Shown piece by piece: positions 1 through 40,279 of a stretch of DNA of 64,000 nt; the stretch's first letter is position 1, and each line of letters starts with the position of its first letter. The position numbers were made by a program, and so were the translations under genes. The DNA comes from Macrostomum lignano. Taxonomy: Eukaryota. The DNA lies in NCBI GenBank assembly GCA_002269645.1, contig NIVC01000195.1:62001-126000 (forward strand), written 5' to 3'. The notes below the pieces were generated by a model. It ran no database searches, was not told the origin of the DNA, and was given only the letters and a program-made list of their open reading frames with translations.

Positions 1-1052
1 CTGGGTGTGCAGTGGAGTAGACTGGGTGTGCATTGGAGTAGGCTGGGTGTGCAGTGGAGTAGGCTGGGTGTGCAATGGAGTAGGCTGGGTGTGCAGTGGA
101 GTAGGCTGGGTGTGCAGTGATGTAGGCTGGGTGTGCAGTGGAGTAGACTGGGTGTGCAGTGGAGTAGACTGGGTGTGCAATGGAGTAGGCTGGGTGTGCA
201 TTGGAGTAGGCTGGGTGTGCAATGGAGTAGGCTAGGTGTGCATTGGAGTAGGCTGGGTGTGCAGTGGAGTAGGCTGGGTGTGCAGTGGAGTAGGCTGGGT
301 GTGCATTGGAGTAGGCTGGGTGTGCAGTGGAGTAGGCTGGGTGTGCAGTGGAGTAGGCTGGGTGTGCAGTGGAGTAGACTGGGTGTGCAGTGGAGTAGAC
401 TGGGTGTGCAATGGAGTAGGCTGGGTGTGCAGTGGAGTAGACTGGGTGTGCAATGGAGTAGGCTGGGTGTGCAGTGGAGTAGGCTGGGTGTGCAGTGGAG
501 TAGGCTGGGTGTGCAGTGATGTAGGCTGGGTGTGCAGTGATGTAGGCTGGTTGTGCAGTGGAGTAGGCTGGGTGTGCAATGGAGTAGGCTGGGTGTGCAG
601 TGATGTAGGCTGGGTGTGCAGTGATGTAGACTGGGTGTGCAGTGATGTAGGCTGGGTGTGCAGTGGAGTAGGCTGGGTGTGCAATGGAGTAGGCTGGGTG
701 TGCAGTGATGTAGGCTGGGTGTGCAGTGGAGTAGGCTGGGTGTGCATTGGAGTAGGCTAGGTGTGCAGTGGAGTAGACTGGGTGTGCAATGGAGTAGACT
801 GGGTGTGCAGTGGAGTAGACTGGGTGTGCATTGGAGTAGGCTAGGTGTGCAGTGGAGTAGACTGGGTGTGCAATGGAGTAGACTGGGTGTGCAGTGGAGT
901 AGGCCCAGTGGAGTAGACTGGGTGTGCAAAGGAGTAGGCTAGGTGTGCAGTGGAGTAGACTGGGTGTGCAGTGGAGTAGGCGCAGTGGAGTAGGCGCAGT
1001 GGAGTAGACTGGGTGTGCAGTGGAGTAGGCTGGGTGTGCAGTGGAGTAGACC
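1..1052. repeat. Minisatellite, 21-bp unit (CTGGGTGTGCAGTGGAGTAGG), runs off the window start
   Basis: Directly visible tandem array; explains ORFs 5..235, 133..519, 232..747, 236..760 and 721..942. Confidence 0.97.
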
Positions 1053-1638: not shown

Positions 1639-24987
<23,349 letters not shown>

Positions 24988-26738: not shown

Positions 26739-27557
26739 ACATGTATTTACCGGTAAGAATGCTTGGACTTGGATGACTCGATCGCTTGAACACCCACTTT
26801 TGAGAATAAGAGAATTTGAGGGCTTGCCATGATACAGTCATACAGTACAGTAAATATACAATAAATACGCTTGCATATGCAGCCACATTAAGACACTACC
26901 TAAAGCATCAATTCCTACTACTATTCTAAAGTAAGTCCCTGCATGCACCTTCATGTGGAAATTTACAGATGGTTTTTTCCACTTTATGCCCAATATTTTA
27001 TCAGCTGTATGTTCCCGCAGTTAAAAATTGTTTTTTCGTCGGACAGACAAATTAAACTACATGTTATAACCGCATGTAATTAACTTGTAATTAAACGCAA
27101 AAGGGAACTACTATTATTTTACTGTCCTTTAGGGATATTCATAATGTGCTTCCGTGTGCAATGCGTAGAGGAAACTTCCACTTTCGGTCCATTGTTACCA
27201 AATGGGAGTTCGGTGTGCTAAATCACACATGTACACGCGCGCAGAAGCGCTTACGTACATGCAGCAAGGTATCAAATGAGTATATGCAGTTTTAAACAGT
27301 ATTGAGTTGTTCTGTCTCGCGAAAGCATTCTTGCGATGACGCACAGATCGAATCGTGAGTCGGTCATGGCACCTCGTTCTATTGGTTGATTCACTCCCGT
27401 ATCCTTGCTACTTAAGTTCATAATCTATTGATCAATATGCAGCTCGTATGAAAGCTACCGCGGATCTTTTGAGCTCACAATATTTTATCTGATCTGCATC
27501 AGAGGTGGTCAACACAAAAAGTACAAGTAACAAAAGTAAACTTGGATCACAGAAATC

Positions 27558-28499
27558 ATGGCCGAGAGCGACATTTTCGACATTCTGAACTGCATCAGCA
27601 AGGCGATCTTGGAAATCAAGCCGCTGCGAGACACCAGACCGGAGCTCGGCCGCGCTATCGAAGAGGTCAAAAAGCACGCGGATGTGGTGGAGAAATTCAG
27701 CCTGCCGAAGGGTGAGCAGCTCGATGACTTGAAGCTTTCGAGCAAAGAAAGGAGTTATTGGAAGGCGCGCATCTTGAAGCTGACAGATGCGCTGACTCCG
27801 TTGCTGAGCTCGCTGCAGTTGGAACTGTGCACAGCCCGCGACACCAGCTGCGAGCTCGAGCGCTGGCTTCGTAGCTCCGACACAGCAATCCAAGAATTCG
27901 ACGGCTTTGTTAATAAAATCAAAGCCGGTTCCTCGTCGGTACCACGACAGGTCGTAGAGAACTTGTGCGCCTTCCTGCGGCAGTTTGAGCAGATGGGGGA
28001 AGCCTTCTCCAGCACATTCGAGGCGTTCAACAGTCAGCTGAGCAGGGCGCAGCAGCTGACTGAGCAGCTTCAAGCCGAAATGGACCGGCAGTCGATCGAA
28101 ATAAGCAGAAAAGCGGGCAGAGACATGTGGCTTCGAGTGGTCAAAGCGCTGGGCTGGACGGTGGGCTCTGCCGGTGTCGTGATGCTCGGCTTTTACTACG
28201 GCGATCAGACCTTTGACATGGCCGCTTCGATGTTTAAAAAAGCCATTAAAAATGTAAAACAGGCGAACGGAATCCGGAAGACAAAGCGAGCGCTGCCCCG
28301 CCAGATCCAGCAGAACTGCGACAAAGCCCTTTCCCGCGACCTGACGGTCAGCTGTGACCGAGCCGCCAGCATCCAGTGGAGTCCGCAGTTCACGGAGATA
28401 CTGAAATGCCTGGACGTCATCATCACCACCAGAGCCAGTGAGGAGAGGATCGCTCAGCTGCAGAAGCGACTTCGGGACCTTGGCATTGAGGATGACTAG
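27558..28499 (+). CDS. Intronless 313-aa alpha-helical/coiled-coil protein with a central hydrophobic segment; unknown family, paralogue A
   Basis: Open GC-rich ORF in AT-rich DNA; hydrophobic WLRVVKALGWTVGSAGVVMLGFYY; aligns by eye with the ORF at 34396-35244. Confidence 0.75.
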   Translation: MAESDIFDILNCISKAILEIKPLRDTRPELGRAIEEVKKHADVVEKFSLPKGEQLDDLKLSSKERSYWKARILKLTDALTPLLSSLQLELCTARDTSCELERWLRSSDTAIQEFDGFVNKIKAGSSSVPRQVVENLCAFLRQFEQMGEAFSSTFEAFNSQLSRAQQLTEQLQAEMDRQSIEISRKAGRDMWLRVVKALGWTVGSAGVVMLGFYYGDQTFDMAASMFKKAIKNVKQANGIRKTKRALPRQIQQNCDKALSRDLTVSCDRAASIQWSPQFTEILKCLDVIITTRASEERIAQLQKRLRDLGIEDD

Positions 28500-28799
28500 C
28501 AGATGATGATGTTGGATCGGACTCGTTTCAGCTTCCTCTGCAACCATGGTGACTAGCAATATATAACTGACATCTTCCCTGGTTCAATTCATGCCTAAAA
28601 TCAACCCGGAACGTTTTAAGGACAAATTTGTTCCTCTTCTGATGGCTGAATTTCTTATGAACTCTTGTCGATTGGTTTGTGAGTTCAAAGTTTGTGAGTT
28701 GGCTCGTACTTAGGATTATTAATTAACCAGCTTTCGAATTGGCTTCAAATATATTTGCCTAATACACTAAAGAAGCACAATTTTTCACACCCTCTTTAC

Positions 28800-30044
28800 A
28801 CTGACTGACTTGAGTGAGTGGGTGACTGATTGACTGACTTGAGTGAGTGGGTGACTGATTGACTGACTTGAGTGAGTGGGTGACTGACTGACTGACTTGA
28901 GTGAGTGGGTGACTGATTGACTGACTTGAGTGAGTGGGTGACTGACTGACTGACTTGAGTGAGTGGGTGACTGACTGACTGACTTGAGTAAGTGGGTGAC
29001 TGACTGACTGACTTGAATGAGTGGGTGACTGACTGACTGACTTGAGTGAGTGGGTGACTGATTGACTGACTTGAGTGAGTGGGTGACTGACTGACTTGAG
29101 TGAGTGGGTGACTGACTGACTGACTTGAGTGAGTGGGTGACTGACTGACTGACTTGAGTGAGTGGGTGACTGATTGACTGACTTGAGTGAGTGGGTGACT
29201 GACTGACTGACTTGAGTGAGTGGGTGACTGATTGACTGACTTGAGTGAGTGGGTGACTGACTGACTGACTTGAGTGAGTGGGTGACTGACTGACTGACTT
29301 GAGTGAGTGGGTGACTGACTGACTGACTTGAATGAGTGGGTGACTGACTGACTGACTTGAGTGAGTGGGTGACTGATTGACTGACTTGAGTGAGTGGGTG
29401 ACTGACTGACTGACTTGAGTGAGTGGGTGACTGATTGACTGACTTGAGTGAGTGGGTGACTGACTGACTGACTTGAGTGAGTGGGTGACTGATTGACTGA
29501 CTTGAGTGAGTGGGTGACTGACTGACTGACTTGAGTGAGTGGGTGACTGACTGACTGACTTGAGTGAGTGGGTGACTGACTGACTGACTTGAATGAGTGG
29601 GTGACTGACTGACTGACTTGAGTGAGTGGGTGACTGATTGACTGACTTGAGTGAGTGGGTGACTGACTGACTTGAGTGAGTGGGTGACTGATTGACTGAC
29701 TTGAGTGAGTGGGTGACTGACTGACTTGAGTGAGTGGGTGACTGACTGACTTGAGTGAGTGGGTGACTGACTGACTGACTTGAGTGAGTGGGTGACTGAC
29801 TGACTGACTTAAGTGAGTGGGTGACTGACTGACTGACTTGAGTGAGTGGGTGACTGACTGACTGACTTGAGTGAGTGGGTGACTGACTGACTGACTTGAG
29901 TGAGTGGGTGACTGACTGACTGACTTGAGTGAGTGGGTGACTGACTGACTGACTTGAGTGAGTGGGTGACTGACTGACTGACTTGAGTGAGTGGGTGACT
30001 GACTGACTGACTGAATGACTGACAGACTGACAGACTGACTGGCA

Positions 30045-30075
<31 letters not shown>
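28800..30075. repeat. Minisatellite, 25/29-bp unit (GACTGACTGACTTGAGTGAGTGGGT)
   Basis: Directly visible. Confidence 0.96.
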
Positions 30076-30119
30076 TTAAGCATGTGCTTAAGGTTCTCCA
30101 ATGAGGTTCTCCAATTGAA

Positions 30120-30130
30120 CCTCACTGACT

Positions 30131-30161
<31 letters not shown>

Positions 30162-30166
30162 AGACT

Positions 30167-30200
<34 letters not shown>

Positions 30201-30230
30201 GAGACTGACTGACAGACTGACTGACTGAGA

Positions 30231-30265
<35 letters not shown>

Positions 30266-30382
30266 TGACTGACTGACTGACTGACTGACTGACTGACTGA
30301 CTGACTGACTGACTGACTGACTGACTGACTGACTGACTGACTGACTGACTGACTGACTGACTGACTGACTGACTGACTGACT

Positions 30383-30425
<43 letters not shown>

Positions 30426-30582
30426 TGACTGACTGACTGACTGACTGACTGACTGACTGACTGACTGACTGACTGACTGACTGACTGACTGACTGACTGA
30501 CTGACTGACTGACTGACTGACTGACTGACTGACTGACTGACTGACTGACTGACTGACTGACTGACTGACTGACTGACTGACT

Positions 30583-30625
<43 letters not shown>

Positions 30626-30640
30626 TGACTGACTGACTGA
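30120..30640. repeat. (GACT)n microsatellite
   Basis: Directly visible. Confidence 0.97.
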
Positions 30641-30798
30641 CTTAAAACCATTGGCATTTAAGCAACATGGATTGAAGCAACATAAATTAAACGACTGGGA
30701 TTAAAACAAGGGGGATTTTTGGGATTAAAGCAGCAGAATTAAAGCAACTGAGATTATCAATAGCTTTCATAGTTCAGAGTCCAGTTTTCACCAGAAGT

Positions 30799-31818
30799 TC
30801 AGCGCACCAGACCGAAGAAGCTGCGGATCTCAGCCTCGGTCATTGAGTCGTTCATGACAGCCACTGCCTGCACCGTGCCGTTCAGCATTCGCGAGTCGCC
30901 ACGTTGAAATCCGAGTCTCAGACTGGTGCAGTTGGGAATAACCGATGCAGTATATGAGCCAATCACAGTCCCCTTTTCCGGCGGCACGAAGCCTCCGTTG
31001 GAGAAGAAAGTTCGGCTCGAGACTGACGCCGACGTCAGGCCGACTTCCACGGATGAATTCGCGTCAAAAAAGTTTGTTTCCAGTGCGGTTTGGTAAGAAG
31101 AATAACTCGAAGCGATCCTGACGCCGAACAGGCCTCTTGAAGCTCCGTCCCAGAAGGCGGCTCCAAAGCCACTCCAAGCGGTGCAGTCGTAGCTCTCAAG
31201 AATTGGTGCATCCCCGATCTCCCGCTTGAGCCTGACCAGCCACGTGAGTCCCTGCTGCAGGTTTGCGAACTCCACGTTCTCCAGCCACATCTTGGACGAC
31301 ACTCCGTCGAGCTTGGCTCCCTCGCTGCTCCACTCCACATTCTCCGACATCCACTGCTGCGTCTGGCCGCACACCAAGTTGCTCCTGCTGGCGTCCGCAT
31401 CGTCGCTCATCACCAAGGCGGCCCTCAGCTTCGAGACCACACCCATCACTGCTCAAAGTGATGAAGAACGCAGCTCTGTCATTGGCGAATGCGGCACAGC
31501 GGCGGGGCTGCGAGCTCTCCGCAGCAGCGAGTCCATCGATCAGGTGGCACACTGCGGTGAATTGGAAGAGCGATCAGCAGTCGCGGCTGTACGAGGTCGA
31601 ACTGGGCCACCTGCAGGCCGCTCGAGCCAGCCTCCATGAGGCACTCGCTGATTCCTTTCGGAGTCTGGGCCGCCCGCACTGTCAGATTCTCAGGCAGGCA
31701 CTGCGGGCTGCTCAGGCGGTGCCAGGAGCCCGGCAGGCTCTCGCAGAGGACCAGCTGGGCCAGATAGGCCGCTGCGGGGCAGAACGGAGACTGGAGTAGC
31801 GATGAAGCTGGTTGCCAT
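30799..31818 (-). pseudogene. Disrupted gene for a probably secreted protein: Cys-containing (PAN-like?) N-terminus plus LamG/pentraxin-like domain
   Basis: ORF 30799-31449 has the LamG_3 pattern (LDGVSS...TWLVRLK...LRLG...LNGTVQAVAVMNDSMTEAEIR). Upstream coding-like sequence from ATG 31818 is split over frames, with an in-frame TGA at 31574-31576. Confidence 0.5.
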
Positions 31819-32104
31819 GCTGGCTGCAGTGCGATATTGCGGATGCAAGAGCTGGGAGGGAGGCAGTCGGCAAAAATCTTGCATGTAGTAAAATTTATCC
31901 TGCTCCCGTTGTTGAGCTCAATCGCCCCTACCAGCAGCTGTCCAAGCCATCAGACCCACCTTAGAAACTATCAAATGTCAACTTAAAATGCATAAAACTT
32001 ACCATAGAACTTTAGGAAAGTTTCTAGAATGCCTCAGCTGCTTTATTTAAATGAAGCAGACTCAAATAAGATTACAAAAAGTTTCTCAAACTAAAGGCCT
32101 CAGC

Positions 32105-33599
32105 ATGGACGTGAAGCTACGGGCGCAGTCGCTGATCGAGTTCGGCCTGCCGCGCAACTGGATTGCCCTGGTCGTCGAGCGCTTCGCCCAGGGCGGCATC
32201 ACCAGCCTCACCAGCAACGAGCTGTACATGATCGTCAAGCGGGTTTGCAACATCCTCCGGACCGAGGCCTCCGTGATTGACGTACGAGGCGACTGCCGGG
32301 TGGTCGGCAACCTGCACGGCAGCATTGAGAGCCTGCAGGCGATCTTCCGCACCTACGGCTGGCCAAGCGACGTCTGCTACGTGTTCCTCGGCGACTACCT
32401 TGCCACGATCGACGACAAGATCCAGACGAACGTCTTCGTTCTGCTGCTCATTTTCAAGGTGGTCTACCCGAAGCACATCCTGCTGCTGCGGGGCGCCAGC
32501 GAGTGCGAGCACTGCGCCGCGGACATGGGGCTGCTGGACCTGCGTGAGTTGTGAAGCACCTGCCTGGGCTGTGTCAGGGGGAACAGGACTTAATATCCCC
32601 TATGTATCCGGAATTCAATTTGATGTGGTATGCTGATGCACCTTATGATACTGCTACGAGCGTACTTAGTAAGAAGCATATTGTGTGGGAATGCACCGAA
32701 AAACCATGATTATTCGACTCTAAGGGCGCACTGCTTTTTTATTGCTGTGTTTCAAGCGGGACCAAATTTACATTTGTAGCTCGTAGAATTCATGAGAAAT
32801 TTTTCTACGAACTTGCTACCAATGCCTCCGCAGTGACAACTTCATTCACGGCCTCCCTGTACCGCGAGTTCAAGTCCGTCTTCAAGTACCTGCCGCTTGC
32901 CGCCCGAGCAAACGGCGTTCACCTGATGTGCAACGCGTCTCTCAGCCTGAAGCGAGGCAACCTGCTGGACCTGGAGCAGGTGGTCCGGCCCTGCACCATC
33001 TGCCACCGGGACGGCATCATGCGCCTGCTGGCCAGGCAGCCGTCTCGACTAGGTGACCACACGCTGCAGGCCGACCCGCTTGAGGACTTCGACGAGGGCG
33101 AGACCGAAGGTTTTTGAGTCTTTAGAGACAACTGTTTGAGTTATTATTGAGGGGGACTCAGAAAAAATCTCAAGTTCTTTCTCATTCTACGCACTCACCG
33201 CGTCCAGCAACCAGCAGCAACCAGCAGCCAACAGGATCAGCGTAACAGGGCGCCAACATAGGGAGGGCTTAACTAGGGAACATCTGTTTCAGTAGGAATC
33301 GAAGTTGCTCGCATCCTTTCTCCGCAGATGTCTGCGAGGCCATCAGCTTTATGAAGCGCAGCAACATGAAGATCTGCGTCCGGAACGAGGGCATCGAACA
33401 GTCGCTGGCGGGCGGCTACAACGTCGAGGGCAGGCAGTGCAACGTGATCTCGATTGCGTCCGCCTCGAACATCCGCGGTCAGCCGTGCCAGGGCGTTGTG
33501 CTGGCCGTGCACCGCAACTGCGCCTCCACGCTGCACCCGACTGATCCGAAGGCGGCCAAGCCGGATGTTCGGCTGATCATGTACTGCCCTAATAAGTAG
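32105..33599 (+). CDS. PP1-like (PPP family) Ser/Thr pseudophosphatase, 3 exons
   Basis: Phase-consistent exons 32105(or 32051)-32543, 32834-33109, 33328-33599, collinear with the PP1 fold. Motifs read GNLHG, GDYLATI, LRGASE, MCNAS, VRNEG, SASNI. Confidence 0.85.
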
Positions 33600-34395
33600 C
33601 TGAACCTGCAGTAGCCTCAGGTGCTGATTATTTGCCACTGTTGGATCCCCGATCTGACCTTTCCTGTCCTGTTTGATTACATATAAATCCCACTTTTGCG
33701 TCAGTATGATTCATATGAATGTGGCTGATTCAGACTGCCCCTTTCATACTAGATAGAAACTTATCGTCTTGATTAATATTAAAAAGCATTAACTATATAG
33801 TTGTAAATACAATCTGACTAACGACCATCACAATAATAATAAAGTCCTGCGGATCCCTAGGTTCATATACAGGTAAAATGACGACAAATTAATCGTCTTC
33901 TCTTTTTTACACAAGCAATGATTTGCAGATGTACAAAATCTAAAAGTTATATTGTAAATTCTTTCGAATATTGAAAGCATGATAGTCTTAGAGTTAGCGG
34001 ACACCAACGTCAACCAGCAGACATTTAAAAAATCATTTAATTTGTGGATACATTTGCAAATACAAAGTTGGCCGAAAGTCAGCGTTGATTCCGGTATTCT
34101 TGAAAATGAGACAAGTAAAACCACCATAGCCTAATGCCACCATAAGCAACCATTTCGATCTTATCGGCCTTACGAAAGCCGGAACAGTTACAAGGAACCA
34201 CGTCGAGCACAATGCGCTGAGCTTGGTAATGGCAAGTACACTTGCACGTACAATGACAGGGAACTAAATTGTGCAGACATGTGCTTCGAATTAGGAACTC
34301 AGCGAATGATTATTAAAAGCCCAAGCAACTTGTTGCAGTAGAGGTCTTGTAGCTGCAGAGCAGAGCAATCGAGCAAAATTAAGCCAATTTACTAA

Positions 34396-35244
34396 TTCAA
34401 AGTAATAAGCAATAGCTGCACTCAGATCGATGCACTCAGGAAACTTCAGCAGCATGAGGATGAGGAGTTCAAGGCAAGGCTGATCAAGACTAATGTGTTA
34501 CCAAGACTAAAACTACTGATGGAGAGTCTGCGCGAGGTGAGCGACTCCGGGTACGAGCTGGTGGGGTGGCTCAACACATTTGACAAAGATTTCGAAGCGT
34601 TTTTTAAATCCGTGATGGGAGACATCTATTCCAGCAGCACCACACCTGAGTACATTGAGGCCACTAAGAAATGGTGCAATTTCCTGACTGACTATACGGA
34701 AATGGCTGTCGATTATTCCACGGAATTCAACAAATTTTTCGGCCAGTTGGGCGCTGCGCATCAGCTGGCAGAGAGTCTGGACTGCGATTTTGAGGAGATA
34801 GCTGAGGACATTCGTCGGTGTGCAAAGAAAAAGAAATGCATATTGTGGGCTATGCGAGCTGGTCTTGCCGTGGTGACCGTTGGTGCCGTCATTGCCGGCT
34901 ACTTCCGCCCGGAAATCCTTCCCACAGCCGGTGCTTCTATCGCCAAGTTTGTGTACTCGACGTACAGGTACACCACAGATCAGGCTGAGAGCGCGGCTAG
35001 GTGCGAGCGGGTGGCAGGTGAGATCAGAGCCACCATCAAAGATTCTGCAATCTGCGTGAGGAGAAGCTGCGACGCATTTGATGGAAACGACTGGATCGCG
35101 CAGATAGTGGCAAAACTGGTGGAGTCGCTCGAGACTTTCACCGGTATTAGAAGGCGACTCGTGGCTGAGTGGCATGGGTTCAACTCGATGGCTGATTTTG
35201 AGGAGCTTCCCACCCAGGCCATCTCGCGATGCACTTTTTTGTGA
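34396..35244 (+). CDS. Intronless alpha-helical protein with a central hydrophobic segment; paralogue B (5' end unresolved)
   Basis: Frame is open from 34396, upstream of the tracked GTG, and includes FKARLIK matching WKARILK of paralogue A; no in-frame ATG before the homologous region. Confidence 0.65.
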   Translation, partial: FKVISNSCTQIDALRKLQQHEDEEFKARLIKTNVLPRLKLLMESLREVSDSGYELVGWLNTFDKDFEAFFKSVMGDIYSSSTTPEYIEATKKWCNFLTDYTEMAVDYSTEFNKFFGQLGAAHQLAESLDCDFEEIAEDIRRCAKKKKCILWAMRAGLAVVTVGAVIAGYFRPEILPTAGASIAKFVYSTYRYTTDQAESAARCERVAGEIRATIKDSAICVRRSCDAFDGNDWIAQIVAKLVESLETFTGIRRRLVAEWHGFNSMADFEELPTQAISRCTFL

Positions 35245-36824: not shown

Positions 36825-39775
36825 TTGACTTACTTGACTTAGCTGCAGGGGGCGTCCGGCGGATGCAGCGGGGAGGCGGAGGAGACCGCCCATTCCGCTA
36901 GCCCCTGGCGACCAATGACTTCCGTTGAAGTGAAGTCGCTCAGGGGGACCCGTCGGTCTCGCCTGCAGCGCGATCCTCCTCACCGACAGTGGGGAAGAAA
37001 TCGGCTCGTCCCGTGTCCCTGAGGTACCGGGCGAGCAGCGGGATGCTCTCGGGCCTGCAAACGTCGGAGAGAACCGGGTTTGGCCCGAGGGTGAGTAAGC
37101 CTGGCCCTGGTGAAAACCGGGCAGTGGCAGATAAAATGCTCGGCGTTTTCAGTGCCTGAGCGGCAGAAGGGGCACCGCTCCTCGGGTACCTGGCCCTGAA
37201 GGAAGCGGTGGCGAGAGAAGCAGCCATGCCCGGAGAGAGCCATGCTAACTGCTCTGAGGTCTCTGCGGTTGAGCCTGAGGAGGGCTCTACGCAGGAGAGG
37301 GGAGGGGCAGGGGACGGCCGCCCGGGATTGCCTACAATTCCGGGTGTCGTGCCACCTGCGGAGATGCTCGGAGTCAGCCCAGCGCTTAACGCGGGAGTTG
37401 ATCACCGAGGCGGGGATGGGGGCCCCCAGGCCCGGCCCCAGCAGCGCGCCGGCGGAGCCAGCCTTGGCCAGCAGGTCGGCGTGCTCGTTGCCGAGGAAAC
37501 CGGCGTGGCCCGGGATCCATCTGAGCTCTACCTGGTTGCCTAGCGCAAGCCCGTTGAGCTGGGTGTTGCAGTCCAGGACGGACCTGGAGCTGGTGGTGCA
37601 GCGGCAGAGGGCCCGAAGGGCTGCTTGGCTGTCAGAGTGAAAAATAAGCTTCCGACCGCTAAGCTGCCTTCGGCGCAGTTCTGCCGCGCAGGAGCTGATG
37701 GCAAGCACCTGGCTCTGAAAAACACTGGAGTTGAGCCCAGTGTGCTGGGAGTAGTTCCACGCCACTTCTCCCTTGAAGAAGACGCACGCTCCGAAGCCTG
37801 AAAGACCATGCTTCATAGAGCCGTCAGTGTAACAGTGGACTTCAGAATCGCTCCAGCTGTCACTCGCCTCATGTCGAGGCTGAATAGTGACCTTATACCC
37901 TTGGCTCAGGAGAAGGGTGGCTGGAATCGAGTCCGAGAGGATGTTGAGCCCGCCACATTCTTCTAGAGCCTTGAGGCAGAGGTCAGAGTGCGGGATAAGC
38001 GACCGCTTCTTAAAGGCCCGCACTTTCTTGAAGGCCACCCCAGCATCCAGAAGACGCCGGGTGCTCTTCGCCGCCTCTCCTTTGATATAAATATCCAGAG
38101 GAGGGGTGCAGAGGAAGGCATTCATGCCTTCAAAAGGAGTAGAGGGTGGAGCGCCCATAGTCATGCGGCAGGCTCTGCCCTGGATTTTGTAGAGAGCGTC
38201 GAGGTTACTCTTGACGCCCAGACCGCTAGCCCACACGAGGCTGGCGTAACTGATCGAGGGGCGGATGATTGCAGTGTAAATCCACCACAGCTTCCTGGGG
38301 TGAGCCCCCAGGTGGTGCCCACGGCGCGCCTGATCTGAGCCAGGACAGCCAGGGCTTTTTTAGCTTTAGTTTGAATGTGCGGAGTCCAGTTGAGCCTGTG
38401 GTCCAGAGTGAGGCCCAGGCAGCGGACCTGCTTCTCCATGGAAATGTTCTTTCCATAGAGGGTGAGGGGCTTAATGGTCCAGAGCAGTTTGTTGGTAAAC
38501 ATGACCGCTGTGGTTTTCGACTCTGAGAGTCTAAGACCACATTGGTTTGCCCAACGCTCCGCTCGTCCCAGAAAGCCCTGCAGAAGATCTCTGATGGTGT
38601 CAACCGAGGGGCCCGCGCAGATCGCGGTCACGTCATCGACATAGCCCACCTTGAGAATGGGGTCGTGGAGATCACTGCAAAGCAGCTCATCCATGACCAT
38701 GTTCCAGAGAACGGGGGTGAGAACTCCGCCCTGGGGGCCCCCTTTTTGGACAGGCGCCGAAAGAGAGCTGCCGTTCAGGTGGGCCACAACAGTGCGGTTC
38801 CGGATCATGAACATGATCCACCGGACAAGGTGAGGGTGCGTGGCCCTGGATTCCAGGGCTCTGCAAAAGGCCTCGAAGATGACGTTGTCGAAGGCCCCCT
38901 TAATGTCCAGAAAAAGCGAGAGGGCAAAGCCGCTGCCAAGAACGGCCCTCTCTAGGAAGTCAACAATGACATGGAGGGCACTCTCGGTAGACCTGCCCGC
39001 GCGGAAGGCGTGCTGGTTCTGCGAGAGTGGGAAGCGCTTCAGCTCGACTGAAAGTAGGCGCCAGAGCACCAGTCTCTCGAGGAGCTTGAGGCAGAAAGAA
39101 GTGAGGCTGATAGGCCTGAAGGCCTTCACCGATTGGTAATCGCTCTTTCCAGGCTTGGGGATAAAGACCACCCGGGCCTCTCTCCACGCAACTGGTACAT
39201 AGCCCAGTTCCACACAAGCTCGGAGGAGACGACAGAGGAGGTCCAGAAAGCGGTGGTTTTTCACCGCCTCGTGTAAGAACGCTGGGTAGATGCCGTCGGG
39301 CCCAGGCGCCTTGAACGGGTTAAAGGACCTTGCCGCTCTAATAATGCGGTCTTTGGTGATTATAGACTTTGCTAGGCCTTGCCCTCCCACTGTGTGGTCA
39401 GGCGGGCCCTGCTGAGTCGGAGATTTAGGGAAGAAACTGTTGAGCATTAGCTCCAGAGTCTCTTCAGAGCTCCCTGTGACCGAGCCGTCAGGTCTCTTAA
39501 CAACAGAGAGTTTAGAAAAACGGTCATTCGTGAGTGCCTTAACCACGCGGGCTACGGGGCGAGAGCCCTCAAGCCCTTCGCAGTATTGGCGCCACTTGGC
39601 CGTCTTGGCCCTTCTGACTTGGCCCTTAAACTCGTGGATCGCACGGGTATAGACCTCTCTGTCAGATGGGTCTTTGGTTTTGAGCGCTCGCCTTTGGAGG
39701 GTCCTGGCTCGGCGCCGAAGGGCCCCGAGTTCTGGGTTCCACCAGGGAGCAGATTTCTTGCCTTTATAGGCGTGC
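36825..39775 (-). mobile_element. 5'-truncated non-LTR retrotransposon (I group, LOA/R1-like): RT, RNase H, zinc knuckle
   Basis: KAPGPDG, FRPISL, LFLDIKGAFD, PQGGVLTP, YVDD; RNase H YTDGS, SDSQAAL, WIPGHAG, GNEHADLLAK; CPFC...EH..CHC. One 1-bp frameshift near 38296; GTCAAGTAAGTCAA tail. Confidence 0.92.
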
Positions 39776-40279
39776 ATGTAATTATACAGACTATGTGATT
39801 TATGAGGTCAGTCCTTAGACCACTCCGGTGTCTGCGGTAACAAAACAATAGAGGGATCCTTTAGCTGGTGAGCGATTCTAGACTACAATTCCCTCCTAAG
39901 TCACAAGATCCCAAGGCCATTTTAATGTCTTTCCTCCTAGAGCTTGGGTTCGATGCAGCAGGGGTTGGGGAAGTGCAGGTCCCAGAGCTCTCTCGTGGTG
40001 CACATCTTACGGGGACTTATTTAGAAGTATTGATACTGCTACATAATTACTTGGTTGAATTAGGCTCATTCTCGGTGATCTTCTACTCTGATCCTAGCTC
40101 GGCTTCTATTCCATGCCCTGAGACAGATGCACTCTCTACTCACACTTCATGCCACGACTCATGTTAAATAAGTAAACAGACAGCAGCAAACGAGCTGAAT
40201 GGCTAATGCCCCAAGTTACTGGCCCTAAACTTAGCCCTAACAATTCGGTTTACTATGAAAGCGGAATAAATTAAGACAG

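Follow-up and report, generated by a model that had tools for sequence, protein, structure and literature searches.

The question raised by this locus is what two open reading frames (ORFs) of the flatworm Macrostomum lignano encode, i.e., whether ORF1 and ORF2 are related to each other and whether their products act on membranes. The window, i.e., the whole stretch of 64,000 nucleotides that was analysed, belongs to contig NIVC01000195.1, and coordinates below are window positions unless another locus is named. A first-pass annotation made from the letters alone had described the two frames as highly diverged, intronless paralogues without signal peptides and with a layout like that of pore-forming toxins. 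It had proposed a lineage-specific, fast-evolving family with membrane or immune activity. By their sequences, the two ORFs belong to a real, undescribed, lineage-restricted gene family that is found in Macrostomum only as far as databases show. The best-supported reading of these sequences is that the family engages a membrane through a conserved small-residue central segment, and a role as a toxin or in immunity is plausible but unproven.

Paralogy of ORF1 and ORF2 and extent of the family

Both frames lie where the first-pass annotation had placed them (Table 1). BLASTP with compositional adjustment aligned the two translations over 186 columns with 26% identity (E=7e-12), and the three motif pairs quoted earlier as a sign of paralogy all fall inside this alignment. 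A non-significant alignment had been named in advance as a reason to abandon the relationship, and this outcome did not occur. Independent support came from tblastn, in which ORF1 (E=1.6e-31) and ORF2 (E=9.5e-15) both matched the domain of a third family protein, P0002. The high divergence was also found: ORF1 and ORF2 share 26-29% identity, and each shares 26-32% with the core family. Because their mutual distance about equals their distance to the core family, the two are not a recent pair. Judged by these alignments, ORF1 and ORF2 are real, distant paralogues.

The extent of the family was searched with a HMMER profile of ORF1, its homeolog and ORF2, scanned exhaustively against 1.84 billion representative proteins. 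Eight matches were obtained (E 1e-191 to 2e-6), and all eight representatives were from M. lignano, in agreement with the proposed lineage specificity. Seven of them were named "hypothetical protein". The eighth, P0002, is a 3511-residue UniProt model named "ribonuclease H" and is apparently chimeric; it joins the family domain with vWA-like and papain-like motifs, recognized by eye, and with retroelement sequences. The family was found only by the exhaustive scan. In word-indexed protein searches, the sole relative of ORF1 was P0001 (BOX15_Mlig005639g1, M. lignano, 95% identity), ORF2 returned nothing, and a 10-sequence profile returned nothing new. Six family gene identifiers did not occur in the full-text literature or in the Macrostomum paper supplements that were searched for expression data.

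The homeolog of ORF1 is carried by locus L001, i.e., scaffold NIVC01001143.1. L001 and the window are collinear with approximately 95-99% DNA identity, and the gene order is identical, i.e., SHIP-like (minus strand), ORF1-type, Metallophos-like and ORF2-type. In the Mlig_3_7 assembly, duplicated blocks with an identity of at least 95% add up to 180 Mb (PMC5730564). Because of these blocks and the collinearity, L001 is regarded as a duplicated, i.e., homeologous or allelic, copy of the window locus.

The loci of P0001, P0003, P0005, P0007, P0009, P0010 and P0011 were retrieved and screened by tblastn together with the window. At least 14 family copies were found in these eight sequences, several of them as same-strand tandem pairs or triplets. 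Three copies lie in L002 (one unannotated), and two each in L005, L007 (one unannotated), the window (ORF1 and ORF2) and L001, in which the ORF2-type copy is unannotated. The gene model of P0011 covers two separate copies, 23 kb apart in L005. Every copy is one uninterrupted frame of 281-341 residues, or approximately 420-490 residues in the P0006 clade; the mean number of introns per gene in the M. lignano genome is 4.9, and the GenBank gene models of family members derive from RNA sequencing transcripts (PMC5730564). For three intact copies, i.e., one each in L001, L002 and L007 (Table 1), no gene has been called in the Mlig_3_7 scaffolds, and the protein collection lacks them.

The assignment of ORF1 and ORF2 to this family is based on full-length similarity and on shared motifs. 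Both have the family motifs L-E-x-W-L and F-x-x-F-x-x-x-L-x-x-[AS]-Q, the central hydrophobic block and the C-terminal S-C-D...IQ/W. The family is spreading by tandem and segmental duplication. Its neighbours are ordinary intron-containing host genes, i.e., a kinase, a leucine-rich repeat protein, a Zip transporter and a SHIP-like gene, and they are kept between homeologs. No flanking repeat common to different clades was detected. An origin as mobile-element or transposon cargo was rejected on these two grounds, i.e., the unshared flanks of the clades and the ordinary host neighbours.

Coding status, truncation of ORF2 and rate of evolution

ORF1 is probably a working gene. Its homeolog is annotated as one coding sequence of 954 nucleotides, and the GC content at third codon positions (GC3) of ORF1 is 0.73 versus approximately 0.43 GC in the surrounding 26-28 kb region. 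As the annotation of the homeolog shows, the earlier description as intronless stands for ORF1. ORF2 of the window, however, is a 5'-truncated copy and not an intact gene. Position 34396 is just the first codon after a stop, and no in-frame ATG was found before 34519. Translation from that ATG would give 241 residues without the first helices.

The truncation was recognized by comparison with L001. The 129 bp deleted from the window held the ATG and 43 codons, and they are present in the intact ORF2-type frame of L001. The N-terminus kept by the L001 copy aligns with the N-terminus of ORF1, and therefore the long form is ancestral and ORF2 of the window is truncated. Because the start and the N-terminus were lost, ORF2 of the window probably represents a pseudogene, or else a null allele whose homeolog is intact. 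As a side observation, the spliced leader of M. lignano ends in ATG and its trans-splice acceptor motif is YTNCAG (PMC8629364). A CTTCAG in frame with the start-less ORF2 fits this motif (Table 1), and it is a speculative possibility that trans-splicing at this site might supply a start codon.

Across the copies, the sense frame is open in every one, even at a synonymous divergence (dS) above 1, and the antisense frame is not. GC3 ranges from 0.53 to 0.74 versus approximately 0.43 GC in the window regions that hold ORF1 and ORF2. Long antisense ORFs in the codon-aligned frame were observed over both genes (Table 1). Antisense stretches of comparable length are open in several paralogues and much shorter in others. 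The 375-residue antisense ORF was rejected as a gene, because the antisense frames are broken in several paralogues and the sense frame never is. The antisense ORFs appear to be a side effect of GC3-rich codon usage rather than a second gene.

The proposed fast evolution was supported by the ratio of nonsynonymous to synonymous divergence (dN/dS), which was 0.4-1.1 among close copies. Between the window and L001, it was 0.87 for ORF1 (18 substitutions) and 1.13 for ORF2 (10 substitutions), counts that are too few to separate fast evolution from decay. P0003 and P0009 gave 0.48 (8 substitutions), and the copies of L005 and L006 gave 0.39-0.48 (23-42 substitutions). Copies a and b of L002 gave 0.82 at dS 0.28 with 179 substitutions, and the deep pairs, which are saturated, gave 0.37-0.52. 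As these ratios suggest, the family is evolving under weak constraint or episodic positive selection, with frames and motifs kept.

These ratios bring in the explanation that the ORFs are non-functional, i.e., decaying duplicates or repeat or mobile cargo that stay open by chance in GC3-rich sequence. It would account for dN/dS of approximately 1 in both ORFs between the window and L001, for the truncation of ORF2 and its missing annotation in both loci, and for the open codon-aligned antisense frame in several copies. The genome is also very repeat-rich, and a non-long-terminal-repeat (non-LTR) retroelement lies 1.7 kb downstream of ORF2. However, 14 of 14 copies have an open frame of approximately 300 codons with conserved motifs and length, although dS between clades exceeds 1, and the antisense frames are broken in several copies. 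The clades have no common flanking repeat, their ordinary host neighbours are conserved between homeologs, and several members have transcript-based gene models. This explanation is considered very unlikely.

Protein anatomy and the membrane reading

The core members have approximately 300 residues. No N-terminal hydrophobic segment is present in them or in ORF1 and ORF2, and the earlier statement that the two proteins lack a signal peptide was borne out. Two AlphaFold2 models of ORF1 were made, i.e., one from a 3-row alignment with a predicted local distance difference test (pLDDT) of 51.7 and a better one from an 11-row alignment with a pLDDT of 58.8. In the better model, residues 60-190 reached a pLDDT of 60-82 and residues 200-282 stayed below 50. 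Two short N-terminal helices, two long helices, the hydrophobic region and two C-terminal helices were modelled in this order (Table 1). The C-terminal tail is kept even in ORF1 (RIAQLQKRL..RDLGIE), and members of the P0006 clade have 5-8 tandem copies of the 13-residue unit EKDDRIAQLETEG.

The hydrophobic region of the core members is 44-61 residues long and has 0-4 charged residues, 55-80% G/A/S/T and a Kyte-Doolittle maximum of 1.5-2.1. Its centre is an almost invariant ALGFFTGG, around which the uncharged Gly/Ala-rich hairpin spans 45-50 residues, and basic residues are found on both flanks. At the sequence level, such a pattern is characteristic of a helical hairpin whose two ends lie on one side of a membrane. 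Conservation within the family is highest in the block made up of the first hairpin half and the FFTGG turn, with a mean BLOSUM pair score of 2.05 versus 0.8-1.5 elsewhere.

ORF1 and ORF2 differ from this pattern. The first-pass annotation had given each of them basic residues, a Gly-containing hydrophobic stretch and later helices, and these were confirmed: RKAGRD precedes LRVVKALGWTVGSAGVVMLGFY in ORF1, RRCAKKKK precedes CILWAMRAGLAVVTVGAVIAGYFR in ORF2, and more helices follow in both. By alignment, the segment of ORF1 corresponds to the first hairpin helix of the family. No hydrophobic hairpin was found in the two proteins; each has a single hydrophobic segment of 20-25 residues, and the second half of the hairpin-aligned region is charged. 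Besides the first helix, they retain a turn that is degenerate (LGFYYG, AGYFRP), and the uncharged two-helix hairpin is absent from both. They form a divergent subgroup and may behave differently from the core members.

From these features, a lineage-restricted, helical, cytosolically made and membrane-inserting family with divergent ORF1 and ORF2 is the favoured explanation, and we give it about an even chance. Because no signal peptide is present, the protein would be made in the cytosol, and it would be all-helical. Its elongated bundle would consist of two short helices at the N-terminus and two longer ones of 60-70 residues. After the conserved hydrophobic segment, at least two C-terminal helices would follow, ending in a short coiled-coil-like tail. 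The central segment would insert into a membrane, in core members as a helical hairpin with both ends cytosolic, as suggested by the basic residues on either flank and by the lack of charge in the FFTGG turn. In ORF1 and ORF2, the membrane helix would be single and weaker. The Gly/Ala faces would serve in helix-helix packing or oligomerisation, and the outcome may be either a pore or mere anchoring of the helical domains.

Several results weigh against this explanation. The family has no significant relative, in structure or in sequence, that would link it to membranes. The transmembrane potential of ORF1 is marginal by its Kyte-Doolittle maximum, and the hairpin-aligned region of ORF1 and ORF2 holds 7-9 charged residues, mostly in the second half. 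In the model, both the hydrophobic region and most of the C-terminus have a pLDDT below 50. The dN/dS near 1 between the window and L001 was obtained from 10-18 substitutions and fits relaxed constraint or loss of function equally. The ORF2-type gene is unannotated in the window and in L001 and absent from the protein collection.

Comparison with known families gave no identity. In Pfam scans of 17 family sequences, nothing exceeded a gathering threshold. The weak recurring matches were to coiled-coil families and, over the hairpin, to the two-transmembrane families Holin-X, SLATT_1 and Bacteriocin_IIc; these sub-threshold matches probably reflect composition. Sequence and profile searches of the PDB returned designed repeat proteins, Rad50, nucleoporins and syntaxin at E 5e-5 or weaker, i.e., coiled-coil noise. 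A SNARE-like or tail-anchored identity was rejected, as the Syntaxin Habc matches are noise (E=0.05) and the hydrophobic block is central. The block occupies approximately residues 165-215 of 300, and another 90-120 residues of helix come after it, which does not fit the tail-anchored protein that had been named earlier as the contrary case. An N-terminal four-helix bundle of the MLKL/HeLo/SesA type was also rejected: SesA matched two members below threshold (E=0.006 and 0.018, 15.6-17.2 bits versus a cut-off of 26.3), and the matches lie on C-terminal helices (residues 210-279).

The coiled-coil matches suggest another explanation, i.e., a soluble coiled-coil or structural protein of cytoskeletal, ciliary or scaffold type, in which the hydrophobic stretch is a buried packing element. 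Most Foldseek matches of both ORF1 models were long helical bundles such as BAR/F-BAR domains, SMC arms and axonemal proteins, in line with the coiled-coil families among the PDB and Pfam noise, and the segment of ORF1 is only marginally hydrophobic. However, 44-61 near-chargeless residues with Kyte-Doolittle values up to 2.1, as in the core members, are unusual in a soluble protein. This block is also the best conserved of the family and is flanked by basic residues on both sides. It is reasonable to consider a soluble protein rather improbable. For ORF1 and ORF2 of the window in particular, a soluble structural role or decay may still apply.

The earlier comparison was with ClyA/Hbl-type toxins, APOL and MLKL. 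Its layout part holds, i.e., amphipathic helices of great length were found ahead of a central hydrophobic segment, and more helices after it, but membership in any of these families was not supported; their Pfam models were not hit, and the PDB held no matching sequence. ClyA has approximately 300 residues and no classical signal peptide, and its chain runs from a short N-terminal helix through two long antiparallel helices and a hydrophobic tongue to a pair of C-terminal helices. The Macrostomum family resembles the group of ClyA, Hbl, Nhe, AhlABC, SmhABC and YaxAB in its length of approximately 300 residues, in a predicted elongated bundle whose framework is a pair of very long antiparallel helices, and in a central hydrophobic, Gly-containing stretch of 20-50 residues between the long and the C-terminal helices. 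This group was also among the best natural-protein Foldseek matches of the better model, none of them significant. However, there is no significant sequence, profile or fold match between the two. The Macrostomum family is cytosolic and comes from a eukaryote, and the 1.84 billion proteins contain no bacterial relative of it; its hairpin is far richer in Gly/Ala, and ORF1 and ORF2 have one hydrophobic helix only. The likeness in order and length of elements may serve as a lead, not as a test.

Such a lead points to a conditional alpha-pore-forming family like ClyA/Hbl/Nhe/AhlB or APOL, used in defence, prey killing or cell death. In this mechanism, the soluble bundle would shield the hairpin, and at a target membrane the hairpin would swing out and oligomerise into a pore. 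Besides the element order, Foldseek hits of the better model speak for it: ClyA chains were matched at E 0.2-0.8 and TM score 0.29-0.36 (1qoy, TM score 0.36, probability 0.72), AhlC at E 0.40 and SmhB at E 0.70. A PDB profile search gave SmhA at E=3.9, the sub-threshold hairpin matches include lytic or effector families, i.e., Holin-X, SLATT_1 and Bacteriocin_IIc, and tandem expansion with high dN/dS is typical of conflict genes. All these matches are, however, non-significant (Foldseek E of 0.05 or higher and TM score of 0.39 or lower; no match of either model against the PDB at E of 0.001 or lower). The toxin chains were interleaved with PACSIN/F-BAR domains and de novo helix bundles, which score alike, and the lower-pLDDT model gave no ClyA-family match. 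The 10-sequence profile gave no toxin match in the PDB search. HlyE, Bacillus_HBL and ApoL models matched none of the members with per-protein Pfam tables, and the 25 families matched most often in the 10-member Pfam scan did not include them; for ApoL, these negatives extend to E 0.1-1 and to E 5, respectively. Furthermore, the second hydrophobic helix is lost in ORF1 and ORF2. We consider a conditional pore-forming family unlikely.

ApoL (PF05461) is a lineage-restricted, fast-evolving and tandemly expanded family of helical proteins with hydrophobic hairpins and a C-terminal coiled-coil or leucine-zipper tail, and its members are mostly intracellular without signal peptides. The Macrostomum family is similar in being a lineage-restricted, tandem and fast-evolving helical animal family with hydrophobic hairpins, a C-terminal tail of coiled-coil type and no signal peptides. 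It differs in that there was no ApoL Pfam match in the scanned members and no fold evidence, and the motifs are unlike. Holin-X (PF07332), SLATT_1 (PF18181) and class IIc bacteriocins share an uncharged small-residue hairpin with basic flanks, but they have neither the N-terminal bundle of approximately 165 residues nor the C-terminal helical domain of approximately 90 residues. Holin-X was matched below threshold in 4 of 10 aligned members (E 5e-3 or weaker), and the matches with a reported position lie over the hairpin.

Among the versions of the membrane reading, a conditional pore like that of ClyA or APOL is the most interesting, with a low probability in our estimate. Its fullest form is still more doubtful, i.e., that the proteins are animal-encoded, cytosolic pore-forming or permeabilising effectors, analogous to ClyA and APOL, which either diverged beyond recognition or were born in the Macrostomum lineage. 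They would then multiply as tandem copies in an arms race of immunity, prey or parasite killing or sexual conflict, and the subgroup of ORF1 and ORF2, with one hairpin helix lost, would perhaps regulate the core members or serve as their decoys.

If membrane insertion or permeabilisation is true, the favoured membrane-inserting family would be a new, independent animal case of a long-helix bundle plus hydrophobic hairpin. M. lignano has working transgenesis and RNA interference, so direct testing is feasible. At present, the family joins the many lineage-specific families of this repeat-rich and partly duplicated flatworm genome that are still uncharacterised. The main use of the analysis is in annotation, i.e., the family definition, three intact uncalled ORFs and one truncated copy.

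Neighbouring sequences of the locus

Table 1. Positions of the two ORFs, their parts, uncalled family copies and neighbouring sequences
Feature	Locus	Position	Strand	Remarks
ORF1	window	27558-28499	+	intact single-exon gene, 313 residues plus stop; divergent Macrostomum family member
Short N-terminal helices	ORF1	residues 3-25, 27-46		AlphaFold2 model
Long helices	ORF1	residues 62-122, 130-197		AlphaFold2 model
Hydrophobic region	ORF1	after residue 197		AlphaFold2 model
C-terminal helices	ORF1	residues 239-270, 276-307		AlphaFold2 model
Central hydrophobic segment of ORF1, LRVVKALGWTVGSAGVVMLGFY	window	28131-28196, residues 192-213	+	Kyte-Doolittle 19-mer maximum 1.53
Antisense ORF over ORF1	window	27432-28559	-	375 residues
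ORF2	window	34396-35244	+	open frame, 282 codons plus stop, no start codon
Junction of 129-bp deletion in ORF2	window	34421/34422	+	pairwise DNA alignment with L001, flanks approximately 99% identical
CTTCAG	window	34444-34449		fits YTNCAG
First remaining in-frame ATG of ORF2	window	34519-34521	+	MESLREV..., read from sequence
Central hydrophobic segment of ORF2, KCILWAMRAGLAVVTVGAVIAGYFR	window	34834-34908	+	preceded by KKKK; Kyte-Doolittle maximum 2.01
Antisense ORF over ORF2	window	34513-35175	-	220 residues
Uncalled ORF2-type copy	L001	16074-17021		315 residues
Uncalled family copy	L002	4988-5878		296 residues
Uncalled family copy	L007	7419-8375		318 residues
SHIP-like gene, 3' part	window	19043-24658	-	SH2 and inositol 5-phosphatase
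(ACTG)n microsatellite	window	28800-30643		1.8 kb, 116-bp higher-order unit
PPP/Metallophos-like phosphatase	window	32051-~33600	+	homeolog L001:13748-15247
Non-LTR retrotransposon	window	36980-39777	-	two overlapping ORFs

The gene between ORF1 and ORF2 was recognized as a PPP/Metallophos-like phosphatase. In its first-exon ORF, GNLHG, GDYLATIDD and RGASE are found at the motifs GDxHG, GDxVDRG and GNHE of active PPP phosphatases. Because these motifs are replaced, it looks like a catalytically dead pseudophosphatase. In Pfam, the homeolog gave a weak Metallophos match and the window exon gave none.

Directly downstream of ORF1, the (ACTG)n microsatellite yields spurious minus-strand "SVSQ" ORFs of 446 and 189 residues. 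The retrotransposon downstream of ORF2 has a reverse transcriptase domain (PF00078, E=6e-29) and an RNase H domain (PF00075, E=7e-11). The SHIP-like gene was assigned by collinearity with L001. It is interrupted by minisatellites of 26-bp, 39-bp and 33-bp units and by a (TGTC)n run, and the copy numbers differ between the window and L001.

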